Part shown: piece by piece, positions 13,942-64,000 of the stretch
Layout of the letters: the number at the start of each line of letters is the position of its first letter
Position numbering within the stretch: the first letter of the stretch is position 1
Source of the DNA: Auanema rhodensis
Taxonomy: Eukaryota > Animalia > Nematoda
Length of the DNA stretch: 64,000 nt
Direction: 5' to 3'
NCBI GenBank assembly: GCA_964057225.1
Contig: OZ059900.1
Span: 6,510,001 to 6,574,000 of the forward strand
Notes under the pieces: model-generated
The model's input: the letters and a program-made list of their open reading frames with translations, nothing else
Told to the model about the DNA's origin: nothing
Databases searched by the model: none
Program-made: the position numbers and the translations under genes

Positions 13942-15117
13942 ATGAAGTGCCTTTTTGTCTTAGGACTGATTGTAGTTGCAGTTGCTGCTCACTCCAGCAC
14001 TGACCCAGAGAAGGACTCTGAGCATCTTAAGGTATATACAGGCTTAAATTATTCTCTGTAATATACGATTCTTAGGGAAAAGAACATGGTGTAAAGTATG
14101 ATCATGAGCAGTTCTTGGGAAAAGATGTTGCCTCTGAATTCGACGAACTCACCCCAGAGAAATCTAAAGAAAGACTTGGGTTTATATTTCTTAGCAAATG
14201 TTTTATATAATTTTTTAATTTTCTAGAAAGCTTGTTCCAAAGATGGATTCTGACAGCGACGGATTCATTGAAGAGAAAGAGTTGAAGGAACACATCAACT
14301 TCATGCAAAAGAGATACGTTAACAACGATGTTGAGAGAACATGGAAGAACTACAAAGATGAGAAGATCGTTGATGGACGTATCAAGTGGGAAGATTACAG
14401 GTAAATATGAACAATCTTTATTAAAACTAACTACTATTACATTTACAGAGAGATGGTCTACGGATCTGCTAATGGAGAAGGACAAGAGCTTGCTCCAGAA
14501 TACAAGAAAATGATTGCTCGTGACGAGAAGAGATGGGCTGTTGCTGATTATGACTCCAACTCCGCTCTTGACAGAACTGAGTATGGATGTTTCATGCACC
14601 CAGAAGATTGCGAACACATGAGAGATGTTGTTGTTGCTGTAAGTCAAATAGTCAATGCTTCACTGAATCAAATGTGAGCGTTTTTCAGGAAACCATCGAA
14701 GACATTGATAAGAACAAGGATGGAGCTGTTGATCTCGAAGAATACATTGGAGATATGTACAGACCAGAAGATTACCCAGAATTGAACGGAAAAGAACCAG
14801 ACTGGGTACAATCTGAGCGCGAAATGTTCAAGGAGCACCGTGATAAGGATGGAGATGGAAAACTCAACGAGGTTTCATTAACATCTCATATCATTATCCA
14901 ATGTATCAATATTTAGGAAGAGATGAGAGACTGGATCATGCCAGTTGGATTCGACCACGCTGAAGCCGAAGCTCGTCACTTGGTTGCTATTGCTGACGAT
15001 AACAAAGACGGCAAGCTTTCAAATGATGAAATTCTTGCTCACTATGACACATTTGTTGGATCTCAAGCCACTGACTACGGAGAGCAGCTTCAGAAGCACG
15101 ATCCTGCTGAGCTCTAA
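13942..15117 (+). CDS. calu-1: Calumenin (CREC-family multi-EF-hand ER Ca2+-binding protein)
   Basis: Exons 13942-14031, 14076-14179, 14227-14400, 14449-14638, 14689-14871, 14917-15117. Signal peptide [16 protein letters not shown], then [10 protein letters not shown]-hands ([48 protein letters not shown]), [10 protein letters not shown] and C-terminal HDPAEL. A TTTTCAG trans-splice-like acceptor at 13921-13927 lies just before the ATG. Confidence 0.96.
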
Positions 15118-49829: not shown

Positions 49830-51824
49830 TCATTGTGAGAGTTGGTAAATAGTGAAAATTAGTAGGAAGGCGAGATCAAGATAGCAGTATGACACAAAGG
49901 TTAGATCTATTCCTTTGCGACGGAACATGACTTGTTGTCCTTTTTTTCGAATGGCTCGACCAGCTGCATAAGCCGCTGAGTCCATACTAGTTATGGGTTG
50001 ATCTGTCATAATACTCTTAAATCGAACAGCATTCCTTTTGAATTGTTTGTTATCTAAATAGATCATATCATAACTATACTAATTTTGATATCAACGTACT
50101 CATAACGCTCAGCAATGACATCACAAACTGATCAGCTGTGAGCGTTAATTTATCGAGAATTTCAGCAAATCCTGCTGCGCGTATCATTTCAGAGTTATGA
50201 GTTTGTTCCGCAAACACTGGCATGAAGACAACTGGTACTTCACCGCAAATAGCATCTTTTACACTAAATTGTGAATATTAATTTCAGTATTATTTCGGCA
50301 ACATGTAACCTTTTCATTCCACCGTGACTTAAAAATACTTTAGTGCTATTATGTGCTAAAATTTCTTTTTGAGGAGCCCATCGTGTAATTTTGCAATGAT
50401 TGCCAATACCCTGAACCTGTTCCATTTTCCCATTGAAAGAAAATATAATTCTAATTCAAAAATTGAATTAATCAACTGTTTATTCGTTATGACATACCTA
50501 TAATCAGTTAGACGATTGATACCTTCTTTGAATGCTTCAAACACATGAGGAGTAGCATATTCCCATCGTACGTTTGAACCAAAAGCAATCATAATTGTTC
50601 CTTTTGATGCTGGATCTTCAATGAAAGTTTTGTATTCTTCATCCAAACTTTTAATTTTCGGACAATCATATGCAACATGAATGGCATCATTTCCAACTAG
50701 AATACGTTAATTTATCATATAATAACCTACTGAACTAACTAGGATGTGGCCAAACAAGGGTATTCAATGCATCAACAAAAATGTATGTGGATTGTTGAAC
50801 AAAATCTCGGACAACATTAGTGTTATGCATTCCAATTTTGGCTAGATTCTATAAAAAATGTTTTGTTGATGTTTACTTTTATGCACTTTACCGATGAAGC
50901 ACCCAACATTGTATCTATTGTTACACCGAACGATATCCATAATCCATGAAAAGTAGAATGAAACCGGTGCCAAAAGTTCGTAATATCAAATTTTCTTTCG
51001 ATCGGTGTATAAAATGATGGTCGATGTATCAAATTCGATCCATATGACAAATGTGATCGGAATAAATGCATCGTTGCACATGTTCCCATTATTCCGTAAT
51101 GAGTGCCTTTTCTTTTTTGTTTGAGAGCAATTCCGTAGGCCGGAATGGCGAAAAGTTCATCAGCAATCACGAAATCCCAAACATCATCAAAAAATGGCTG
51201 CACCTGGAAAAAGAGCTTTGCTTCAGATCCAGTCATCAAAAGGATTTTTTTTCAGTTCTTGGAAAATGTATTGTAAAAACGAACTTGATGATAATGCTTT
51301 TCAATCATTCCCAACAAGGCTTGATTGCTAGATCTCCACATGAATACAAAGTCATTAGGTCCGTAAACAACTTTCCATATTTTTGAAAAAATACTTTTAT
51401 AAAATTCTGGATCTTCTTTAAATACATTCAATAAAATATATGAAACTTCAAATCACATAAACCTTACCTTCAAATTTAACATATGTGTATGATATTTGAG
51501 GTGGATAGTTAAAAGGTTTAGGATTGCTGTCACTTTGTAAGAAATGAATATAATGATTATCTTTTTCCATTCTCAAGAAGTCATTTATTTCGGTCATGAA
51601 TAATAATAAAAACATTTTTTACCTTACTGCAAGCGGCATCATAGTTATAACATGACTGGTTGATCCATGCATTCCCGCAAACACAATTTTTGATTTTACC
51701 AATGTACTTGTTCCATTCTCTGTTTTGGCAGAAACCAAAACCGAAGTTATGAACAAAACTAGACCAACTTTATCTAAACATGTCTTTTATACAATTGTTA
51801 TAGTGAAATGAGTTTACCTCTCAT
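49830..51824 (-). CDS. ugt: UDP-glucuronosyl/glycosyltransferase (UGT family)
   Basis: 7-nt first exon (ATGAGAG), signal peptide, GSTSHVITMMPLA, WDFVIADELF, KGTIMIAFGS, the UGT signature WAPQKEILAHNSTKVFLSHGGMKSVKDAICGEVPVVFMPVFAEQTHN, and a C-terminal TM segment. Confidence 0.92.
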
Positions 51825-52265: not shown

Positions 52266-52899
52266 AATCTTTCAGATTGCCTTTTATTCGCTACCTAAGG
52301 GCAAAAATATAAAAGTAATCATATTCTTACCAGTTTTAACAATAAAGCTTCAGAAATAAATGTTTGAAAACAAGAATGATCGGGTAAAATATTGTTTTCG
52401 TAAAAAAATGAAACCAATTGCTTTTTAAAAAAGAAAAAATGTTGTGTGATTTCTACCAAAAATTCTAAACCCCTAACGGGCTTTTCAATTAAAACCATAT
52501 ACCTATAGCAATTAGGCGAGGATACGATACATTTCAAAACAGTTTCGATATTTATCAAAACTTTAACCATCGTTATCGATTAATTTGAATTTACGATACA
52601 TTGTTTTTGACAAAAATTGATAATTTCAATATTCGATAACTATGAATATATCATAAAAAATTCTGAATCCTAAATTTCTTAAATAAAGATTTTTTCGAAA
52701 AAGTAATCCGTTGAATTGTGAATATAACTATAAATGAAAAAAAAATTTAATTCAAAATATTATTCATAATTACAATGATTTTTTTCTATTTACAGTAGAC
52801 AAACTGAAAATACAAATCTGAAACACATGTTTCAACTCTACTTGTTACAAAAGAAAGTTTGGCTTGAAAAGTAATTGATATTAATAGATTGAGTAATAT

Positions 52900-52967
52900 A
52901 ACATCTTGGTGTATTTGATCTGTTCCAGGTCAGTGAAAAACTCTCACTGGTTCAAATCCTCTCTAAG
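52900..52967 (+). pseudogene. Degenerate tRNA-like Pol III module 1 (left arm; mirror copy 55421-55488 on -)
   Basis: A-box-like TGGTGTA(T/G)TTGA and B-box GGTTCAAATCC at tRNA spacing; the cloverleaf is not intact. Confidence 0.45.
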
Positions 52968-53249
52968 AAATTTATAAAAACAAAAAATAACTCTTTCTCT
53001 CTCTCTCTCTCTCTCTCTACCTATCTCTGTAACTCTGTGTGCTTATCTCTTCTACTCGAAATGAAATCTATAACTTCAAAGTTTCTCTATAAACTCGAAT
53101 CATATTGATAAGATCTGCCAGGAAAACCTTAAAATTCGGGACAAAATTTGTCAATATGAAAACTTTCGGACGGTTCTGATATTCAATTTTTAAGTTAAGA
53201 AAAAACATCATTCCTGATTGAACTAGAAGAAGAGATCCTAACTATTCTG

Positions 53250-53322
53250 AGCAGTTTGGCCTAATGGTCTACTGCATGGATTGCAGGATACGCTACAGGG
53301 TTTGATACCTTTCTCTGTTTTT
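53250..53322 (+). pseudogene. Degenerate tRNA-like Pol III module 2 (left arm)
   Basis: A-box TGGCCTAATGG, B-box GGTTTGATACC, followed by TTTTTT; the anticodon stem is unpaired. Confidence 0.5.
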
Positions 53323-55071
53323 TAAGAAATTCAATATCAAATCGAGAATCCAAAAAACGGTCGAATGGATTTGGACTGTGAAAAAACGTTCTTTTTCAAA
53401 GTTTTGAGCTTTGTAGCTCAGTTAGAAATTAATATTTTTCATTTTTGATTAAATGGGCAAATTGTGGGAGATGAACTCTTTCATCTCACCAAATCTTAAT
53501 AGCCTATCTGGTCTACTATAGAAGTTGTAGCCTCCTAAAGAGGAGATATAAAATCAAAAACGTGACTTTGAAACGCTATATCTCCTTAACCGTTGAGTTT
53601 TTGGGAAATATTTTAGCGGATCTGAACTCTACGCAGAAAGATCTTTTAGAAAAGCTGCCTACATTGAAGATTGGAGTAGTTTGAATTTTCGGAAAATAGA
53701 GAATTCGGTCAATTTCCGGTTTGAGAAATAAAAATTTTGAGTTTTTTAAAAATTGAGGGTGCCTTCTGATAGAGCTTGAAATGCTGATTTCAAATATAGA
53801 AAGGAAATTTCTTTATTCTTACTGTGAAAAGAGTTATGAGACTTTTTATGTTTTGATGTTTTGCATTCAGAAGGCCATATCAACCTTCAGACGACATTTG
53901 AGGAATTTTTAGTTAGCAGAATCGTTTTCTACGTGTCTGGTTTACTTGGTCAACTTAGTTTCCAATGATTTTGTTCGAATTTTCAATTTTCGATCAAATG
54001 GTCCAAATCCATGTACTACCCCCTTACCTACTTTTTCATCAAAGTTGACCATCATCACATGAACTTTTAAGATTTTCACAAGTTTTTTGTTGATTTCCAT
54101 TTTGAAACAACTTCTAACTTGAGAGATTTGTAATGAAATCAGTGTTCCACGAGAATCGGAATAATAACAAGTTTTAGGTTAACAAGATTTGTTGAGCATC
54201 TGAATAATTGTTAGATGAGACAATCATTTCTTGAACTTTCAAAGTATATTCATTAATTCTTTTCTAATATCTTTAATTCTTATTTTTATAAAATATAAGT
54301 AAAGAAAAAAACTTGTGAAAATCTTAAAATTTCATGTGATGATGGTCAACTTTGATGAAAAAGTAGGTAAGGGGGTAGTACATGGATTTGGACCATTTGA
54401 TCGAAAATTGAAAATTCGAACAGAATGATTTGAAACTAAGTTGACCAAGTAAACCAGAGACGTAGAAAACGATTCTGCTAACTAAAATTTTCTCAAATGT
54501 CGTCTGAAGGTAGATATGGCCTTCTGAATGCAAAAGATCAAAACATATAAAGTCTCATAACTCTTTTCACAGTAAGAATAAAGAAATTTCCTTTCTATAT
54601 TTGAAATCAGCATTTCAAGCTCTATCAGAAGGCACCCTCAATTTTCAAAAAACTCAAATTTTTTATTTCTCAAACCGGAAATTGGTCGAATTCTCTATTT
54701 TTCAAAATTTCAAACTACTCCAATCTTCAATATAGGAAGCTTTTCTAAGAGATCTTTTCACGTAGAGTTCAGATCCGCTAAAATATTTCCGAAAAACTCA
54801 ACGGTTAAGGAGATATAGCGTTTCAAAGTCAAGGTTTTGACTTTATATCTCCTGTTTAGGAGGCTACAACTTCTATAGTAGACCAGAGAGGCTATTAAGA
54901 TTTGGTGAGATGAAAGAGTTCATCTCCCACAATTTGCCCATTTAATCAAAAATGAAAAATATTAATTTCTAACTGAGCTACAAAGCTCAAAACTTTGAAA
55001 AAGAACGTTTTTTCACAGTCCAAATCCATTCGACCGTTTTTTGGATTCTCGATTTGATATTGATTTTCTTA

Positions 55072-55144
55072 AAAAACAGAGAAAGGTATCGAACCCTGTA
55101 GCGTATCCTGCAATCCATGCAGTAGACCATTAGGCCATACTGCT
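55072..55144 (-). pseudogene. Degenerate tRNA-like Pol III module 2 (right arm)
   Basis: Minus strand AGCAGTATGGCCTAATGG...GGGTTCGATACCTTTCTCTGTTTTT: consensus A and B boxes plus a T-run terminator. Confidence 0.55.
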
Positions 55145-55356
55145 CATAGTAGTCTATATCATATCCTTCAATTTAATAGAGAATAATGTTTGTTATAAAC
55201 TTAAAAAGTTGAATATTTCAGAAATTTTTGGAGAATTTCTTTTTAGTAAACTTCTATCAAGTTTTTGCTGGAATCGAAGTTTTCTGAAGTTGATATCGTA
55301 TTTTAGAATTTATTTTTCAGAGATGTTTCAAGGTTCAAGTAAGGATAGATATTTAT

Positions 55357-55389
<33 letters not shown>

Positions 55390-56799
55390 GAAAGAGAGAG
55401 ATTTTTTGTTTTTATAAATTTCTTAGAGAGGATTTGAACCAACGAAAGTTTTCAACTAACCTGGAACACATCAACTACACCAAGATGTTATACTATTCAA
55501 TCTATTAATATCAGATATGTTTTCTATGTAAACTTCAAATAGACTGGAATGTAGTATGTATGATATCTATAATATATAAAATAATATAATATATTATTCA
55601 GATGAAACAATCAATTTATTGATAATAAACCACAAAAGATTTGGTGTGTATTTTGTTCTGAACTATCAACATATTTCTTTATAATTTAAATTTTTTCTTA
55701 AATTAATATCAATAGTGAGAAGCTTACATTCTAGTTTTAGTTATTGGATACAAGTTTCTGATCAAAGTTGCCCATTATCTCATGAATTTTCGAAAATTTC
55801 TGGAATTTTCTGAAAGAAAACTCATCCTATGATAAGATTTAAATAAAGAAAAAGCCAATATTAAAATGGCCAGTTTGAGAAATCTTTGTGAATATGGGAC
55901 GGAAATTGTTTTTTTAATTTAATCCTCTTAATGGCTCAAGTTATTTTTTCATTTTTTTTAAAATCATAATGTTAAAATTTCTTTCAACGTACCTATTCTG
56001 AATACAGTTTTTGGAGAAAAAACTGAGTGATTATGAAAGAAATTACGATTGTGTTATATAGATTACACTTATTATATACATATACATTTTTAGATACTTT
56101 ATTTCAACTTATTTTTATTTAAAAATATTTATTGTTTTATAAGCTTAAACATGTTTTTATTCCAATCAACATCGATAGACAACTTCAAATTTTTCATTGC
56201 ATTCGCTGCAAGAATATTAACAAACTTGAAATTGCCTTTTGAAACTTGACATTCGATATTGCTTTCCTGGTTCTAAATATTTGGAACTACTTATTCAATT
56301 CTACACAAAGGAGAAAACTAACTTGAATCGAAAAATTGTAGAGAGAGAGAATAGCCAACTTAGAGAAATATAATGTAAAGATTGTAAAAAGATAAATATA
56401 TACTTACTGTATAATACATCTGTCGAATTCTGAAAATCTCTCATTCTAATTGAATTGATTAATACAGCTAAAAATAAAAAAAAGGAATAAAACAAAAATT
56501 GTGAACTAACGCAAATATGAAAAATAAACAAATACTACTATCTCAGAGAATGTATAATCTCAATATAATACGAAAACATAAAGCGGGAAATATTATATAA
56601 AGTTATTACCGATCATAGCTGAATCAACAAACTACAACAAGATGTGAATATAGAAACTATCTTCCACTATAACCAATGATCAAAATTTTGAAAAATTGAC
56701 TAGACAACGATCATGTACCGTAGTTTGCTCGAGTATTATTGAATTTTTGAAACAAGAAATGAATTTAGGAATTATCTACCACTCTAACCAAAAATATAT

Positions 56800-56856
56800 C
56801 TGATATTAATAGATTGAACAGTATGACATCTTGGTGTAGTTGATGTGTTTCAGTTG
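56800..56856 (+). repeat. Third partial copy of the foldback terminus
   Basis: ctgatattaatagattgaacagtatgacatcttggtgtagttgatgtgtttcag matches 52876-52930 and the reverse complement of 55460-55514. Confidence 0.8.
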
Positions 56857-57445
56857 GATAGAAGTGTGTAAACCAAACTTAACATCAAATAACAAATCTA
56901 CCAGAAGACTAAATTGATGAAAAAAATGAAATTTTAAATAGCTTCATAGGAGGCTCTTCTCACATTCAATTTCCAATTAAAATTACCAAAATCGTAATAC
57001 CATAAATGTTAGAAATATGATTGCTTTGTACTTTTGAGACTCTAAAGGCAGAAGCAATGCTAGGTACTCAACATAATTCAATAATGACATTAAAAATTTC
57101 AAAATTATGAGACTTTTAGAAATTCTAGGTTGTTCTTACAACTCAATGTTGATTCTGTTATTGGTTCATTAAGGTTCTCAGTTGGTTCATACCAAGCTAG
57201 AAATTAATCAGATTTTAACAAAATTTATGCTATTTTAGATAAAATAGTAAATCAGAAAAAGAAAAGAAATAGAGATCTGCCTTACATTTTTTGAATATAT
57301 ATATAGGGATTTTTACCTTTTCTCTTCTCAAAATTTACGATCCAATTCCAAACTAAAGTTTTCGACTTTATGTCTTTTTTAAATAGAGAAAGGCAACTAG
57401 TTCATAAAAATTCCATACAATATCAACAAATGAAACAAAAACTTA

Positions 57446-57527
57446 CGCAGCGAGCAGGGTTCGAACCTACGCGGGCAATGCCCATTGGATTTCAAGTCCA
57501 ACTCCTTAACCACTCGGACATCGCTGC
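57446..57527 (-). tRNA. tRNA-Ser(TGA) copy 1
   Basis: GCAGCGA TG TCCGAGTGGTTAAGGA G TTGGA CTTGAAA TCCAA TGGGCATTGCCCGC GTAGG TTCGAAC CCTGC TCGCTGC G: full cloverleaf, long variable arm, G73, and a TTTTT terminator 4 nt downstream. Confidence 0.96.
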
Positions 57528-57613
57528 TTATTTCAAGCAATCTTTTTTTAACAGAGAAAGGCAACTAGTTCATGAAAATTCCATACAATATCAACAAATG
57601 AAACAAAAACTTA

Positions 57614-57695
57614 CGCAGCGAGCAGGGTTCGAACCTACGCGGGCAATGCCCATTGGATTTCAAGTCCAACTCCTTAACCACTCGGACATCGCTGC
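57614..57695 (-). tRNA. tRNA-Ser(TGA) copy 2
   Basis: Identical to copy 1. Confidence 0.95.
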
Positions 57696-57781
57696 TTATT
57701 TCAAGCAATCCTTTTTTAATAGAGAAAGGCAACTAGTTCATGAAAATTCCATACAATATCAACAAAAGAAACAAAAACTTA

Positions 57782-57863
57782 CGCAGCGAGCAGGGTTCGA
57801 ACCTACGCGGGCAATGCCCATTGGATTTCAAGTCCAACTCCTTAACCACTCGGACATCGCTGC
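57782..57863 (-). tRNA. tRNA-Ser(TGA) copy 3
   Basis: Identical to copy 1. Confidence 0.95.
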
Positions 57864-57949
57864 TTATTTCAAGCAATCTTTTTTTAACAGAGAAAGGCAA
57901 CTAGTTCATAAAAATTCCATACAATATCAACAAATGAAACAAAAATTTA

Positions 57950-58031
57950 CGCAGCGAGCAGGGTTCGAACCTACGCGGGCAATGCCCATTGGATTTCAAG
58001 TCCAACTCCTTAACCACTCGGACATCGCTGC
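57950..58031 (-). tRNA. tRNA-Ser(TGA) copy 4
   Basis: Identical to copy 1. Confidence 0.95.
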
Positions 58032-58117
58032 TTATTTCAAGCAATCCGTTTTTAATAGAGAAAGGCAACTAGTTCATAAAAGTTCCATACAATATCAACA
58101 AATGAAACAAAAACTTA

Positions 58118-58199
58118 CGCAGCGAGCAGGGTTCGAACCTACGCGGGCAATGCCCATTGGATTTCAAGTCCAACTCCTTAACCACTCGGACATCGCTGC
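58118..58199 (-). tRNA. tRNA-Ser(TGA) copy 5
   Basis: Identical to copy 1. Confidence 0.95.
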
Positions 58200-58285
58200 T
58201 TATTTCAAGCAATCCTTTTTTAATAGAGAAAGGCAACTAGTTCATGAAAATTCCATACAATATCAACAAAAGAAACAAAAACTTA

Positions 58286-58367
58286 CGCAGCGAGCAGGGT
58301 TCGAACCTACGCGGGCAATGCCCATTGGATTTCAAGTCCAACTCCTTAACCACTCGGACATCGCTGC
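58286..58367 (-). tRNA. tRNA-Ser(TGA) copy 6
   Basis: Identical to copy 1. Confidence 0.95.
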
Positions 58368-58453
58368 TTATTTCAAGCAATCTTTTTTTAACAGAGAAAG
58401 GCAACTAGTTCATAAAAATTCCATACAATATCAACAAATGAAACAAAAATTTA

Positions 58454-58535
58454 CGCAGCGAGCAGGGTTCGAACCTACGCGGGCAATGCCCATTGGATTT
58501 CAAGTCCAACTCCTTAACCACTCGGACATCGCTGC
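58454..58535 (-). tRNA. tRNA-Ser(TGA) copy 7
   Basis: Identical to copy 1. Confidence 0.95.
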
Positions 58536-58621
58536 TTATTTCAAGCAATCTTTTTTTAACAGAGAAAGGCAACTAGTTCATAAAAGTTCCATACAATATC
58601 AACAAATGAAACAAAAACTTA

Positions 58622-58703
58622 CGCAGCGAGCAGGGTTCGAACCTACGCGGGCAATGCCCATTGGATTTCAAGTCCAACTCCTTAACCACTCGGACATCGC
58701 TGC
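58622..58703 (-). tRNA. tRNA-Ser(TGA) copy 8
   Basis: Identical to copy 1. Confidence 0.95.
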
Positions 58704-58789
58704 TTATTTCAAGCAATCCTTTTTTAATAGAGAAAGGCAACTAGTTCATAAAAGTTCCATACAATATCAACAAATGAAACAAAAACTTA

Positions 58790-58871
58790 CGCAGCGAGCA
58801 GGGTTCGAACCTACGCGGGCAATGCCCATTGGATTTCAAGTCCAACTCCTTAACCACTCGGACATCGCTGC
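58790..58871 (-). tRNA. tRNA-Ser(TGA) copy 9
   Basis: Identical to copy 1. Confidence 0.95.
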
Positions 58872-58957
58872 TTATTTCAAGCAATCTTTTTTTAACAGAG
58901 AAAGGCAACTAGTTCATAAAAGTTCCATACAATATCAACAAATGAAACAAAAATTTA

Positions 58958-59039
58958 CGCAGCGAGCAGGGTTCGAACCTACGCGGGCAATGCCCATTGG
59001 ATTTCAAGTCCAACTCCTTAACCACTCGGACATCGCTGC
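58958..59039 (-). tRNA. tRNA-Ser(TGA) copy 10
   Basis: Identical to copy 1. Confidence 0.95.
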
Positions 59040-59125
59040 TTATTTCAAGCAATCTTTTTTTAACAGAGAAAGGCAACTAGTTCATAAAAATTCCATACAA
59101 TATCAACAAATGAAACAAAAATTTA

Positions 59126-59207
59126 CGCAGCGAGCAGGGTTCGAACCTACGCGGGCAATGCCCATTGGATTTCAAGTCCAACTCCTTAACCACTCGGACA
59201 TCGCTGC
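59126..59207 (-). tRNA. tRNA-Ser(TGA) copy 11
   Basis: Identical to copy 1. Confidence 0.95.
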
Positions 59208-59293
59208 TTATTTCAAGCAATCCTTTTTTAATAGAGAAAGGCAACTAGTTCATAAAAATTCCATACAATATCAACAAAAGAAACAAAAACTTA

Positions 59294-59375
59294 CGCAGCG
59301 AGCAGGGTTCGAACCTACGCGGGCAATGCCCATTGGATTTCAAGTCCAACTCCTTAACCACTCGGACATCGCTGC
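59294..59375 (-). tRNA. tRNA-Ser(TGA) copy 12
   Basis: Identical to copy 1. Confidence 0.95.
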
Positions 59376-59461
59376 TTATTTCAAGCAATCCTTTTTTAAT
59401 AGAGAAAGGCAACTAGTTCATAAAAATTCCATACAATATCAACAAATGAAACAAAAACTTA

Positions 59462-59543
59462 CGCAGCGAGCAGGGTTCGAACCTACGCGGGCAATGCCCA
59501 TTGGATTTCAAGTCCAACTCCTTAACCACTCGGACATCGCTGC
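59462..59543 (-). tRNA. tRNA-Ser(TGA) copy 13
   Basis: Identical to copy 1. Confidence 0.95.
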
Positions 59544-59629
59544 TTATTTCAAGCAATCCGTTTTTAATAGAGAAAGGCAACTAGTTCATAAAAGTTCCAT
59601 ACAATATCAACAAATGAAACAAAAACTTA

Positions 59630-59711
59630 CGCAGCGAGCAGGGTTCGAACCTACGCGGGCAATGCCCATTGGATTTCAAGTCCAACTCCTTAACCACTCG
59701 GACATCGCTGC
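59630..59711 (-). tRNA. tRNA-Ser(TGA) copy 14
   Basis: Identical to copy 1. Confidence 0.95.
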
Positions 59712-59797
59712 TTATTTCAAGCAATCTTTTTTTAACAGAGAAAGGCAACTAGTTCATGAAAATTCCATACAATATCAACAAATGAAACAAAAACTTA

Positions 59798-59879
59798 CGC
59801 AGCGAGCAGGGTTCGAACCTACGCGGGCAATGCCCATTGGATTTCAAGTCCAACTCCTTAACCACTCGGACATCGCTGC
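59798..59879 (-). tRNA. tRNA-Ser(TGA) copy 15
   Basis: Identical to copy 1. Confidence 0.95.
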
Positions 59880-59965
59880 TTATTTCAAGCAATCTTTTTT
59901 TAACAGAGAAAGGCAACTAGTTCATGAAAATTCCATACAATATCAACAAATGAAACAAAAACTTA

Positions 59966-60047
59966 CGCAGCGAGCAGGGTTCGAACCTACGCGGGCAATG
60001 CCCATTGGATTTCAAGTCCAACTCCTTAACCACTCGGACATCGCTGC
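59966..60047 (-). tRNA. tRNA-Ser(TGA) copy 16
   Basis: Identical to copy 1. Confidence 0.95.
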
Positions 60048-60133
60048 TTATTTCAAGCAATCTTTTTTTAACAGAGAAAGGCAACTAGTTCATGAAAATT
60101 CCATACAATATCAACAAATGAAACAAAAACTTA

Positions 60134-60215
60134 CGCAGCGAGCAGGGTTCGAACCTACGCGGGCAATGCCCATTGGATTTCAAGTCCAACTCCTTAACCA
60201 CTCGGACATCGCTGC
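60134..60215 (-). tRNA. tRNA-Ser(TGA) copy 17
   Basis: Identical to copy 1. Confidence 0.95.
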
Positions 60216-60301
60216 TTATTTCAAGCAATCTTTTTTTAACAGAGAAAGGCAACTAGTTCATAAAAGTTCCATACAATATCAACAAATGAAACAAAAACTT
60301 A

Positions 60302-60383
60302 CGCAGCGAGCAGGGTTCGAACCTACGCGGGCAATGCCCATTGGATTTCAAGTCCAACTCCTTAACCACTCGGACATCGCTGC
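60302..60383 (-). tRNA. tRNA-Ser(TGA) copy 18
   Basis: Identical to copy 1. Confidence 0.95.
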
Positions 60384-60469
60384 TTATTTCAAGCAATCCT
60401 TTTTTAATAGAGAAAGGCAACTAGTTCATAAAAGTTCCATACAATATCAACAAATGAAACAAAAACTTA

Positions 60470-60551
60470 CGCAGCGAGCAGGGTTCGAACCTACGCGGGC
60501 AATGCCCATTGGATTTCAAGTCCAACTCCTTAACCACTCGGACATCGCTGC
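60470..60551 (-). tRNA. tRNA-Ser(TGA) copy 19
   Basis: Identical to copy 1. Confidence 0.95.
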
Positions 60552-60637
60552 TTATTTCAAGCAATCTTTTTTTAACAGAGAAAGGCAACTAGTTCATAAA
60601 AGTTCCATACAATATCAACAAATGAAACAAAAATTTA

Positions 60638-60719
60638 CGCAGCGAGCAGGGTTCGAACCTACGCGGGCAATGCCCATTGGATTTCAAGTCCAACTCCTTA
60701 ACCACTCGGACATCGCTGC
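60638..60719 (-). tRNA. tRNA-Ser(TGA) copy 20
   Basis: Identical to copy 1. Confidence 0.95.
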
Positions 60720-60805
60720 TTATTTCAAGCAATCTTTTTTTAACAGAGAAAGGCAACTAGTTCATAAAAATTCCATACAATATCAACAAATGAAACAAAA
60801 ATTTA

Positions 60806-60887
60806 CGCAGCGAGCAGGGTTCGAACCTACGCGGGCAATGCCCATTGGATTTCAAGTCCAACTCCTTAACCACTCGGACATCGCTGC
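60806..60887 (-). tRNA. tRNA-Ser(TGA) copy 21
   Basis: Identical to copy 1. Confidence 0.95.
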
Positions 60888-60973
60888 TTATTTCAAGCAA
60901 TCCTTTTTTAATAGAGAAAGGCAACTAGTTCATAAAAATTCCATACAATATCAACAAAAGAAACAAAAACTTA

Positions 60974-61055
60974 CGCAGCGAGCAGGGTTCGAACCTACGC
61001 GGGCAATGCCCATTGGATTTCAAGTCCAACTCCTTAACCACTCGGACATCGCTGC
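60974..61055 (-). tRNA. tRNA-Ser(TGA) copy 22
   Basis: Identical to copy 1. Confidence 0.95.
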
Positions 61056-61141
61056 TTATTTCAAGCAATCCTTTTTTAATAGAGAAAGGCAACTAGTTCA
61101 TAAAAATTCCATACAATATCAACAAATGAAACAAAAACTTA

Positions 61142-61223
61142 CGCAGCGAGCAGGGTTCGAACCTACGCGGGCAATGCCCATTGGATTTCAAGTCCAACTC
61201 CTTAACCACTCGGACATCGCTGC
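61142..61223 (-). tRNA. tRNA-Ser(TGA) copy 23
   Basis: Identical to copy 1. Confidence 0.95.
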
Positions 61224-61309
61224 TTATTTCAAGCAATCCGTTTTTAATAGAGAAAGGCAACTAGTTCATAAAAGTTCCATACAATATCAACAAATGAAAC
61301 AAAAACTTA

Positions 61310-61391
61310 CGCAGCGAGCAGGGTTCGAACCTACGCGGGCAATGCCCATTGGATTTCAAGTCCAACTCCTTAACCACTCGGACATCGCTGC
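61310..61391 (-). tRNA. tRNA-Ser(TGA) copy 24
   Basis: Identical to copy 1. Confidence 0.95.
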
Positions 61392-61477
61392 TTATTTCAA
61401 GCAATCTTTTTTTAACAGAGAAAGGCAACTAGTTCATGAAAATTCCATACAATATCAACAAATGAAACAAAAACTTA

Positions 61478-61559
61478 CGCAGCGAGCAGGGTTCGAACCT
61501 ACGCGGGCAATGCCCATTGGATTTCAAGTCCAACTCCTTAACCACTCGGACATCGCTGC
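61478..61559 (-). tRNA. tRNA-Ser(TGA) copy 25
   Basis: Identical to copy 1. Confidence 0.95.
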
Positions 61560-61645
61560 TTATTTCAAGCAATCTTTTTTTAACAGAGAAAGGCAACTAG
61601 TTCATGAAAATTCCATACAATATCAACAAATGAAACAAAAACTTA

Positions 61646-61727
61646 CGCAGCGAGCAGGGTTCGAACCTACGCGGGCAATGCCCATTGGATTTCAAGTCCA
61701 ACTCCTTAACCACTCGGACATCGCTGC
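61646..61727 (-). tRNA. tRNA-Ser(TGA) copy 26
   Basis: Identical to copy 1. Confidence 0.95.
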
Positions 61728-61813
61728 TTATTTCAAGCAATCTTTTTTTAACAGAGAAAGGCAACTAGTTCATGAAAATTCCATACAATATCAACAAATG
61801 AAACAAAAACTTA

Positions 61814-61895
61814 CGCAGCGAGCAGGGTTCGAACCTACGCGGGCAATGCCCATTGGATTTCAAGTCCAACTCCTTAACCACTCGGACATCGCTGC
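61814..61895 (-). tRNA. tRNA-Ser(TGA) copy 27
   Basis: Identical to copy 1. Confidence 0.95.
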
Positions 61896-61981
61896 TTATT
61901 TCAAGCAATCCTTTTTTAATAGAGAAAGGCAACTAGTTCATAAAAATTCCATACAATATCAACAAATGAAACAAAAACTTA

Positions 61982-62063
61982 CGCAGCGAGCAGGGTTCGA
62001 ACCTACGCGGGCAATGCCCATTGGATTTCAAGTCCAACTCCTTAACCACTCGGACATCGCTGC
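61982..62063 (-). tRNA. tRNA-Ser(TGA) copy 28
   Basis: Identical to copy 1. Confidence 0.95.
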
Positions 62064-62149
62064 TTATTTCAAGCAATCCTTTTTTAATAGAGAAAGGCAA
62101 CTAGTTCATAAAAATTCCATACAATATCAACAAAAGAAACAAAAACTTA

Positions 62150-62231
62150 CGCAGCGAGCAGGGTTCGAACCTACGCGGGCAATGCCCATTGGATTTCAAG
62201 TCCAACTCCTTAACCACTCGGACATCGCTGC
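62150..62231 (-). tRNA. tRNA-Ser(TGA) copy 29
   Basis: Identical to copy 1. Confidence 0.95.
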
Positions 62232-62317
62232 TTATTTCAAGCAATCCTTTTTTAATAGAGAAAGGCAACTAGTTCATAAAAATTCCATACAATATCAACA
62301 AATGAAACAAAAACTTA

Positions 62318-62399
62318 CGCAGCGAGCAGGGTTCGAACCTACGCGGGAAATGCCCATTGGATTTCAAGTCCAACTCCTTAACCACTCGGACATCGCTGC
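62318..62399 (-). tRNA. tRNA-Ser(TGA) copy 30, variable-arm variant
   Basis: As copy 1 except C>A at 62348 (G>T in the tRNA variable arm). Confidence 0.9.
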
Positions 62400-62485
62400 T
62401 TATTTCAAGCAATCCGTTTTTAATAGAGAAAGGCAACTAGTTCATAAAAGTTCCATACAATATCAACAAATGAAACAAAAACTTA

Positions 62486-62567
62486 CGCAGCGAGCAGGGT
62501 TCGAACCTACGCGGGCAATGCCCATTGGATTTCAAGTCCAACTCCTTAACCACTCGGACATCGCTGC
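62486..62567 (-). tRNA. tRNA-Ser(TGA) copy 31
   Basis: Identical to copy 1. Confidence 0.95.
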
Positions 62568-62653
62568 TTATTTCAAGCAATCTTTTTTTAACAGAGAAAG
62601 GCAACTAGTTCATGAAAATTCCATACAATATCAACAAATGAAACAAAAACTTA

Positions 62654-62735
62654 CGCAGCGAGCAGGGTTCGAACCTACGCGGGCAATGCCCATTGGATTT
62701 CAAGTCCAACTCCTTAACCACTCGGACATCGCTGC
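62654..62735 (-). tRNA. tRNA-Ser(TGA) copy 32
   Basis: Identical to copy 1. Confidence 0.95.
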
Positions 62736-62822
62736 TTATTTCAAGCAATCTTTTTTTAGCAGAGAAAGGCAACTAGTTCAATGAAAATTCCATACAATAT
62801 CAACAAATGAAACAAAAACTTA

Positions 62823-62904
62823 CGCAGCGAGCAGGGTTCGAACCTACGCGGGCAATGCCCATTGGATTTCAAGTCCAACTCCTTAACCACTCGGACATCG
62901 CTGC
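62823..62904 (-). tRNA. tRNA-Ser(TGA) copy 33
   Basis: Identical to copy 1. Confidence 0.95.
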
Positions 62905-62990
62905 TTATTTCAAGCAATCCGTTTTTAATAGAGAAAGGCAACTAGTTCATAAAAGTTCCATACAATATCAACAAATGAAACAAAAACTTA

Positions 62991-63072
62991 CGCAGCGAGC
63001 AGGGTTCGAACCTACGCGGGCAATGCCCATTGGATTTCAAGTCCAACTCCTTAACCACTCGGACATCGCTGC
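62991..63072 (-). tRNA. tRNA-Ser(TGA) copy 34
   Basis: Identical to copy 1. Confidence 0.95.
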
Positions 63073-63158
63073 TTATTTCAAGCAATCCGTTTTTAATAGA
63101 GAAAGGCAACTAGTTCATAAAAGTTCCATACAATATCAACAAATGAAACAAAAACTTA

Positions 63159-63240
63159 CGCAGCGAGCAGGGTTCGAACCTACGCGGGCAATGCCCATTG
63201 GATTTCAAGTCCAACTCCTTAACCACTCGGACATCGCTGC
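63159..63240 (-). tRNA. tRNA-Ser(TGA) copy 35
   Basis: Identical to copy 1. Confidence 0.95.
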
Positions 63241-63326
63241 TTATTTCAAGCAATCCTTTTTTAATAGAGAAAGGCAACTAGTTCATGAAAATTCCATACA
63301 ATATCAACAAAAGAAACAAAAACTTA

Positions 63327-63408
63327 CGCAGCGAGCAGGGTTCGAACCTACGCGGGCAATGCCCATTGGATTTCAAGTCCAACTCCTTAACCACTCGGAC
63401 ATCGCTGC
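63327..63408 (-). tRNA. tRNA-Ser(TGA) copy 36
   Basis: Identical to copy 1. Confidence 0.95.
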
Positions 63409-63494
63409 TTATTTCAAGCAATCTTTTTTTAACAGAGAAAGGCAACTAGTTCATAAAAATTCCATACAATATCAACAAATGAAACAAAAATTTA

Positions 63495-63576
63495 CGCAGC
63501 GAGCAGGGTTCGAACCTACGCGGGCAATGCCCATTGGATTTCAAGTCCAACTCCTTAACCACTCGGACATCGCTGC
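63495..63576 (-). tRNA. tRNA-Ser(TGA) copy 37
   Basis: Identical to copy 1. Confidence 0.95.
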
Positions 63577-63662
63577 TTATTTCAAGCAATCTTTTTTTAA
63601 CAGAGAAAGGCAACTAGTTCATAAAAGTTCCATACAATATCAACAAATGAAACAAAAACTTA

Positions 63663-63744
63663 CGCAGCGAGCAGGGTTCGAACCTACGCGGGCAATGCCC
63701 ATTGGATTTCAAGTCCAACTCCTTAACCACTCGGACATCGCTGC
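63663..63744 (-). tRNA. tRNA-Ser(TGA) copy 38
   Basis: Identical to copy 1. Confidence 0.95.
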
Positions 63745-63830
63745 TTATTTCAAGCAATCCTTTTTTAATAGAGAAAGGCAACTAGTTCATAAAAGTTCCA
63801 TACAATATCAACAAATGAAACAAAAACTTA

Positions 63831-63912
63831 CGCAGCGAGCAGGGTTCGAACCTACGCGGGCAATGCCCATTGGATTTCAAGTCCAACTCCTTAACCACTC
63901 GGACATCGCTGC
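63831..63912 (-). tRNA. tRNA-Ser(TGA) copy 39
   Basis: Identical to copy 1. Confidence 0.95.
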
Positions 63913-64000
63913 TTATTTCAAGCAATCTTTTTTTAACAGAGAAAGGCAACTAGTTCATAAAAGTTCCATACAATATCAACAAAAGAAACAAAAACTTACG

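Follow-up and report, generated by a model that had tools for sequence, protein, structure and literature searches.

Long tandem arrays of a single tRNA gene raise the question of whether they are working gene families, silent repeats, structural elements of the chromosome or stores for the germline. This question is posed by a 64,000-nucleotide stretch of the nematode Auanema rhodensis (A. rhodense below), the window, which corresponds to positions 6,510,001-6,574,000 of contig OZ059900.1 (C8:6,510,001-6,574,000). Its right end is filled by serine tRNA genes with the anticodon TGA, repeated head to tail and continuing beyond the window. With moderate confidence, the sequence points to a working, ribosomal DNA (rDNA)-like and concertedly evolving gene family, whose units would be independent RNA polymerase III (Pol III) genes and would supply most tRNA-Ser(UGA) in soma and germline.

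Anatomy and extent of the array

In the window, ARAGORN finds 39 tRNA-Ser(TGA) genes on the minus strand between 57446 and 63912, and Tandem Repeats Finder (TRF) reports a single array at 57373-64000, with a period of 168, 39.4 copies and 98% matches. The original prediction, made from the window's letters, of at least 39 such genes at a 168-bp period is thereby confirmed, as is its statement that the array runs past the window: the full array in the assembly comprises 238 tRNA-Ser(TGA) genes, arranged head to tail over 40 kb (C8:6,567,373-6,607,423). The features at its left end, in window coordinates, are as follows.

57373-64000, minus strand: left 39.4 units of the 238-gene tRNA-Ser(TGA) array, which runs on to C8:6,607,423 (ARAGORN, TRF, unit comparison)
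57446-57527, minus strand: representative tRNA-Ser(TGA) gene, all 82 nt of which recur unchanged in dispersed genes at C5 7.50 Mb and C6 11.80 Mb
57510-57520, minus strand: A box of the first unit, gene positions 8-18 (sequence)
57492-57494, minus strand: anticodon TGA, gene positions 34-36 (ARAGORN)
57457-57467, minus strand: B box of the first unit, gene positions 61-71 (sequence, Rfam)
57437-57441, minus strand: Pol III terminator of five T, 4 nt past the gene (sequence)
57528-57613, minus strand: 86-nt spacer, ten times as variable as the gene; it aligns at 51/87 with the spacer of the adjacent Ser(CGA) array
62318-62399, minus strand: the sole window copy with an altered tRNA body (position 52, variable arm)

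Each 168-bp unit thus consists of an 82-nt gene and an 86-nt spacer; one unit in the window measures 169 bp, and ten units across the whole array measure 169 or 167 bp. The gene scores 59.5 bits against Rfam RF00005 (cut-off 29) and folds into a cloverleaf with every stem pair canonical, a long variable arm and a discriminator G. A perfect serine cloverleaf had been claimed for each window unit, which holds for the canonical stems and for the 38 identical bodies among the 39, and needs qualifying for the one copy with a variable-arm change. The claim that every unit has its own promoter boxes, discriminator G and terminator stands: an A box and a B box lie within the gene of each unit, a run of five T follows 4 nt downstream, and a T run of at least five is present in 233 of the 238 units. 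With A box, B box and terminator all present in every unit, the units can be transcribed independently by Pol III. TRF gives only the 168-bp period, with no further tandem repeat in the spacer and one gene per unit. A plus-strand open reading frame of 1804 codons over the array was discarded as a by-product of a 56-codon unit, interrupted by the ten units of aberrant length.

Sequence variation and probable selection

Among the 238 genes, 210 are identical, 11 have loop-only or wobble-pair differences and 17 have a broken stem pair, leaving 221 with all stem pairs intact. Diversity is tenfold lower in the gene (0.0032) than in the spacer (0.032), and the neighbouring Ser(CGA) array shows the same ratio (0.0075 against 0.074). 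Variants present in three copies or fewer are equally numerous in both parts (23 in the gene, 23 in the spacer), whereas variants in five or more copies number 0 in the gene and 11 in the spacer (Fisher p=0.0018). The commonest gene variant is found in no more than three copies, while spacer variants reach 91. Rare variants being equal and common ones confined to the spacer, mutations evidently arise in the gene yet do not spread. Common variants are absent from acceptor stem, anticodon arm and variable arm alike, and the majority array gene is identical to the dispersed genes on C5 and C6, whose flanks differ.

Purifying selection would be the simplest cause of the clean gene part, though dispersed genes that are themselves under selection may instead have kept it so by conversion. 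A tRNA-derived satellite or short interspersed nuclear element (SINE) decaying neutrally does not describe the data, given the lack of any common gene variant and the identity with dispersed genes. The array does show the marks of concerted evolution: its units are about 98% alike, the spacers of the TGA and CGA arrays share 59% identity, and the gene is constrained relative to the spacer. The original prediction took the DNA for that of a nematode, correctly. Its description of the locus as a tRNA gene amplified as satellite DNA is apt for the layout and for the complete Pol III gene in each unit, but "satellite" is too weak a term for a repeat whose gene part is selectively constrained. The array is well preserved and probably functional.

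Under a different explanation, the array would be a largely silent, satellite-like by-product of neutral amplification in a genome prone to tandem expansion; a handful of copies at most, or else the dispersed genes, would be in use, and conversion from those active genes would keep the gene part clean. Tandem repeats dominate this genome, and a preprint on it regards repeat build-up as an epiphenomenon (Gonzalez de la Rosa et al. 2026, 10.64898/2026.08.27.747507); Ser(TGA) genes are also present at three dispersed sites, and 17 array copies have a broken stem pair. However, the argument of the preprint concerns eliminated DNA, whereas the array appears to be retained (see below), and two of the three dispersed genes (C6:11.80 Mb and C7:12.21 Mb) lie in blocks inferred to be eliminated. 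Gene variants, moreover, never exceed three copies while spacer variants reach far higher counts. A largely silent by-product is considered unlikely, though it deserves more weight than the other alternatives discussed below.

Array turnover and the neighbouring Ser(CGA) array

The array contains 59 distinct unit sequences. Their haplotypes are arranged as local duplications of 5-10 units at lags of 5-30, together with regional clusters, and the longest exact internal duplicate spans 10 units (1.7 kb). No fixed higher-order repeat was found across the whole TGA array; such a structure was considered and set aside, only local duplications being seen. This pattern suggests that the array turns over by short-offset unequal exchange. 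It also bears on the concern that the assembly might have over-expanded a few copies. At 40 kb the array is longer than a typical HiFi read; yet the 59 distinct units and the short longest exact duplicate argue against assembly looping, haplotypes shift along the array, and the assembly combines HiFi and Hi-C data (10.64898/2026.08.27.747507). Over-expansion is thus scarcely credible.

Beyond the TGA array, 97 Ser(CGA) genes lie in four blocks of alternating orientation with a period of 167/168 (C8:6,611,881-6,630,052), a cluster that contains recent inverted duplications (898 bp at 100%). The TGA and CGA genes differ at 4 of 82 positions including the anticodon, and none of these differences breaks a stem. 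Their spacers can be aligned with 51 of 87 positions identical and 36 of 87 different, an alignment better than all those of 20,000 composition-matched genomic 85-mers; for the interior alone, p=0.007. Both arrays most likely descend from one unit, with a change of anticodon.

A Gag-only long terminal repeat (LTR) element (PF03732; LTRs of 431 bp, 98.6% alike) occupies C8:6,607,446-6,610,323 (L014:3446-6323). It separates the TGA array from a decayed Ser(CGA) gene, and its start lies under 100 bp upstream of the first TGA gene. Broken cysteine-rich reading frames were also observed inside the CGA cluster (L014:7094-7750), one piece having no Pfam match.

In the history that these comparisons suggest, one tRNA-Ser gene with about 86 nt of flank would have been tandemly amplified on the X chromosome, and the amplified unit would later have diverged to give separate TGA and CGA arrays. 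The former may since have expanded, contracted and homogenised through short-offset unequal exchange or gene conversion, with selection keeping damaged tRNA variants from spreading. Each unit would act as an independent Pol III gene through its own A and B boxes and terminator; soma and germline alike would probably obtain most of their tRNA-Ser(UGA) from the array, whose growth may have been one instance of tRNA genes moving into arrays across the genome.

Location on the X chromosome and probable somatic retention

C8 carries the X-specific fluorescence in situ hybridisation (FISH) probes XT-1 (0.5-3.5 Mb), XR-1 (7.6-8.0 Mb) and XT-2 (16-25 Mb), and because these probes map to it, C8 is the X chromosome. 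The sequence of another FISH probe, AT-1, has 115,040 matches in the genome, against 0 for a control. According to a 2019 genome paper, the A. rhodense X lacks tRNA genes, a finding that was read as an exclusion of essential genes (PMC6469403). The X cluster described here, with at least 335 serine tRNA genes, corrects that claim.

As parts of the A. rhodense genome are eliminated from the soma, the position of the array relative to the sites of chromosome breakage is informative. A genome-wide break-site pattern was derived from the confirmed chromosome 5 site, where the motif matches at C6:16,502,171 and the published position is 16,502,174 (10.64898/2026.08.27.747507). On C8, motif sites lie at 5,500,715/5,501,282, at 10,913,771 and in a run at 3.5-kb spacing from 14.217 Mb; this run is described in the preprint as well (10.64898/2026.08.27.747507). 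The sites at C8:5,500,715 and 5,501,282 are twin identical motifs 567 bp apart and likely form the left boundary of the somatic X; similar close pairs are found on C1, C4 and C7.

The array lies between the motif sites at 5.50 and 10.91 Mb, to the left of the retained XR-1 block (7.6-8.0 Mb), and by motif position it is not on the eliminated side of a break motif. Neither the break motif (with up to two mismatches) nor the telomere repeat occurs in the 134 kb around the array. It is flanked by a UDP-glucuronosyltransferase (UGT) gene on the left and a syndapin/PACSIN gene on the far side, the former represented in the window by the following feature.

50077-50646, minus strand: exons of the UDP-glucuronosyltransferase gene at the left flank (PF00201)

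Taken with the preprint's description, the motif positions place the array about 1.07 Mb inside the left somatic X fragment, which would be retained in the soma. As it lies that far inside a segment inferred to be kept, between UGT and syndapin, the array is probably not germline-restricted. This suggests that tRNA arrays in A. rhodense are not limited to eliminated DNA. The X-linkage of the array and its probable somatic retention are the new points here, and both go beyond the text of the two papers.

A proposal that the array provisions the germline or the oocyte, as a maternal tRNA supply removed or silenced in the soma, consequently finds no support in its position, although it had been offered in the original prediction. 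It can draw on the preprint, which lists tRNA arrays among germline-restricted repeats (10.64898/2026.08.27.747507); against it stand the location of the array deep inside the inferred retained X, between conserved genes, and the lack of a break motif or telomere repeat in the surrounding 134 kb. Germline provisioning is therefore very improbable.

Three local interpretations were also rejected. A DNA-elimination junction at 52-57 kb of the window was dismissed, as no motif is present there and genes resume beyond; the GGC-nnn-GCC sequence of each unit is the variable-arm hairpin and has neither the core nor the flanks of the break motif; and the array is not intronic, since the SH3 exons of syndapin end about 5.5 kb beyond the last CGA gene.

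Contribution to the tRNA gene set

An exact 23-nt anticodon-arm pattern gives 231 matches genome-wide, of which 2 are on the plus strand (C5 at 7.50 Mb, C6 at 11.80 Mb) and 229 on the minus strand. The latter number is consistent with the array, and among the matches listed, all those on C8 fall inside it. In a third dispersed Ser(TGA) gene, at C7 12.21 Mb, one base pair of the anticodon stem is altered in a compensatory way. In total, 241 Ser(TGA) genes were found, 238 of them (about 99%) in the X array. The motif map places the C6 and C7 genes in central eliminated blocks, so that one autosomal Ser(TGA) gene would remain in the soma.

High dosage of this isoacceptor in particular, as originally suggested, is a different matter. 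The preprint reports 19,554 tRNA genes in A. rhodense, including tandem blocks of several tRNA loci (10.64898/2026.08.27.747507). Ser(TGA) genes make up 1.2% of that number, and Ser(CGA), Ser(AGA), Ser(GCT) and Leu(TAA) genes are likewise arranged in arrays, with periods of 167-248 bp. For these two reasons, amplification is not peculiar to the Ser(TGA) isoacceptor but extends to the tRNA set as a whole, and the suggestion of a very high dosage of one isoacceptor is not supported.

In three of these the period is 179/189 bp for Ser(AGA), 248 bp for Ser(GCT) and 221 bp for Leu(TAA); they were located at C6 11.31 and 13.87 Mb, C3 12.63-12.66 Mb and C5 6.17-6.23 Mb. According to the motif positions, a chromosome 5 break site separates the two Ser(AGA) arrays, of which one would be eliminated and the other kept.

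Several points weigh against a working gene family that supplies most of this tRNA. The identity of array and dispersed genes could stem from gene conversion instead of selection on the array copies, and with 238 copies selection on each is weak, so that many copies could be silent. The count of Ser(TGA) genes may miss an array of the variant C7-type gene. Somatic retention rests on motif positions and the preprint's description, and the break pattern retrieved neither the full set of four X break sites nor the complete central pair.

Comparison with known tRNA arrays

The array belongs to a kind already described and is one of many tRNA arrays in this genome. Long tRNA arrays had been called best known from Entamoeba; they are indeed described there, but also in the animals Hydractinia and Nematostella (PMC11067881) and in A. 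rhodense itself (10.64898/2026.08.27.747507). The preprint covers the same genome and reports its tandem tRNA blocks in outline; its text mentions them only among germline-restricted repeats, with no isoacceptor named, whereas the present array is X-linked and apparently retained in the soma (Gonzalez de la Rosa et al. 2026).

In Hydractinia and Nematostella, a lineage independent of A. rhodense, tRNA genes of many isotypes form regularly spaced arrays, with tens to hundreds of nearly identical copies, that resemble the present array (PMC11067881). In Entamoeba, most tRNA genes are in uniform head-to-tail arrays of unclear function, a layout like that seen here; the units there hold up to 5 genes, and the spacers of E. 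histolytica and E. dispar contain short tandem repeats (Tawari et al., PMC2652664). The A. rhodense array differs from this type in its single-gene unit, its lack of spacer repeats and its interstitial position between protein genes.

Local tandem amplification of tRNA genes is also known from the Tyr-Tyr-Ser array on Arabidopsis chromosome 1, which differs by its multi-gene unit and its smaller number of units, 27 triplets, as outlined in PMC2886086. The human variable number tandem repeat (VNTR) of tRNA genes at 1q23.3, for which a boundary role was proposed, has multi-gene units and fewer of them (Darrow and Chadwick 2014, as cited in PMC11067881).

Arrays of the 5S rDNA type consist of a single short Pol III gene with a spacer, the gene being conserved while the spacer drifts. 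The present array shares this pattern, but its gene is a type 2 (A and B box) tRNA gene and not 5S.

X-restricted palindromes and a possible structural role

Next to the array, the window contains a palindrome.

52876-55535, no strand assigned: 2.7-kb non-coding palindrome with arms of about 1.2 kb, of a family seen only on C8 (X)

A second copy lies in inverted orientation beyond the far end of the serine cluster, so that both ends are bracketed. Among the 40 of 260 candidates that were scored, about 30 proved to be copies, all on the X, at 5.65-7.12 and 9.14-10.33 Mb; a 27-nt core of the palindrome has 18 matches, all on C8, against 0 for a control. Arms within one copy are up to 99% alike, and copies differ from one another by 10-30%. 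Between 9.14 and 10.32 Mb the spacing of the copies is even (mean 84 kb, coefficient of variation 0.25, below all 100,000 random placements), although large tandem segmental duplications could yield the same spacing. A keyword search of the preprint's text found no mention of the family (10.64898/2026.08.27.747507). The palindrome may be an architectural element specific to the X, a foldback element that spreads locally or a marker of large segmental repeats.

Together with an extension, the palindrome forms an inverted repeat of about 4 kb (91-98%) that brackets the serine cluster (window 52548-56836 and C8:6,631,068-6,635,270). The same sequence recurs at 6.185-6.190 Mb with no tRNA genes nearby, and for this reason the bracket was not taken to prove that the tRNA locus had undergone a mirror duplication.

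These elements invite a structural explanation, in which the array would act as a dense platform for TFIIIC, where condensin or cohesin is loaded and this part of the X is organised, tRNA output being secondary. Such a role for TFIIIC and condensin, also raised in the original prediction, is plausible: in C. elegans, tRNA genes need TFIIIC for binding of SMC (structural maintenance of chromosomes) complexes and for contacts between tRNA genes, independently of Pol III (PMC13142402), and X-restricted palindromes flank the cluster. However, a TFIIIC platform needs the A and B boxes only, yet the acceptor stem, anticodon arm and variable arm are just as free of common variants; similar arrays are present on autosomes; and the palindrome with its extension stands at 6.19 Mb with no tRNA gene nearby. 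Structure as the primary function is quite unlikely, and a working gene family remains the preferred explanation.

A bolder combination would have nearly the whole somatic tRNA-Ser(UGA) gene supply in one X array that doubles as a dense TFIIIC/SMC platform and, together with the evenly spaced palindromes, contributes to an architecture peculiar to the Auanema X (dosage control or its odd segregation). This is a long shot; if it were true, Pol III genes would need sex-specific dosage handling. As a single array holds about 99% of the genes for this isoacceptor and its 26 spacer haplotypes tag the copies, two questions become directly testable, namely how many copies of the tRNA array are used and whether the dosage of X-linked Pol III genes is adjusted between XO and XX animals.

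Elsewhere in the window, an EF-hand exon of a calumenin-like gene was observed at 14587-14916.

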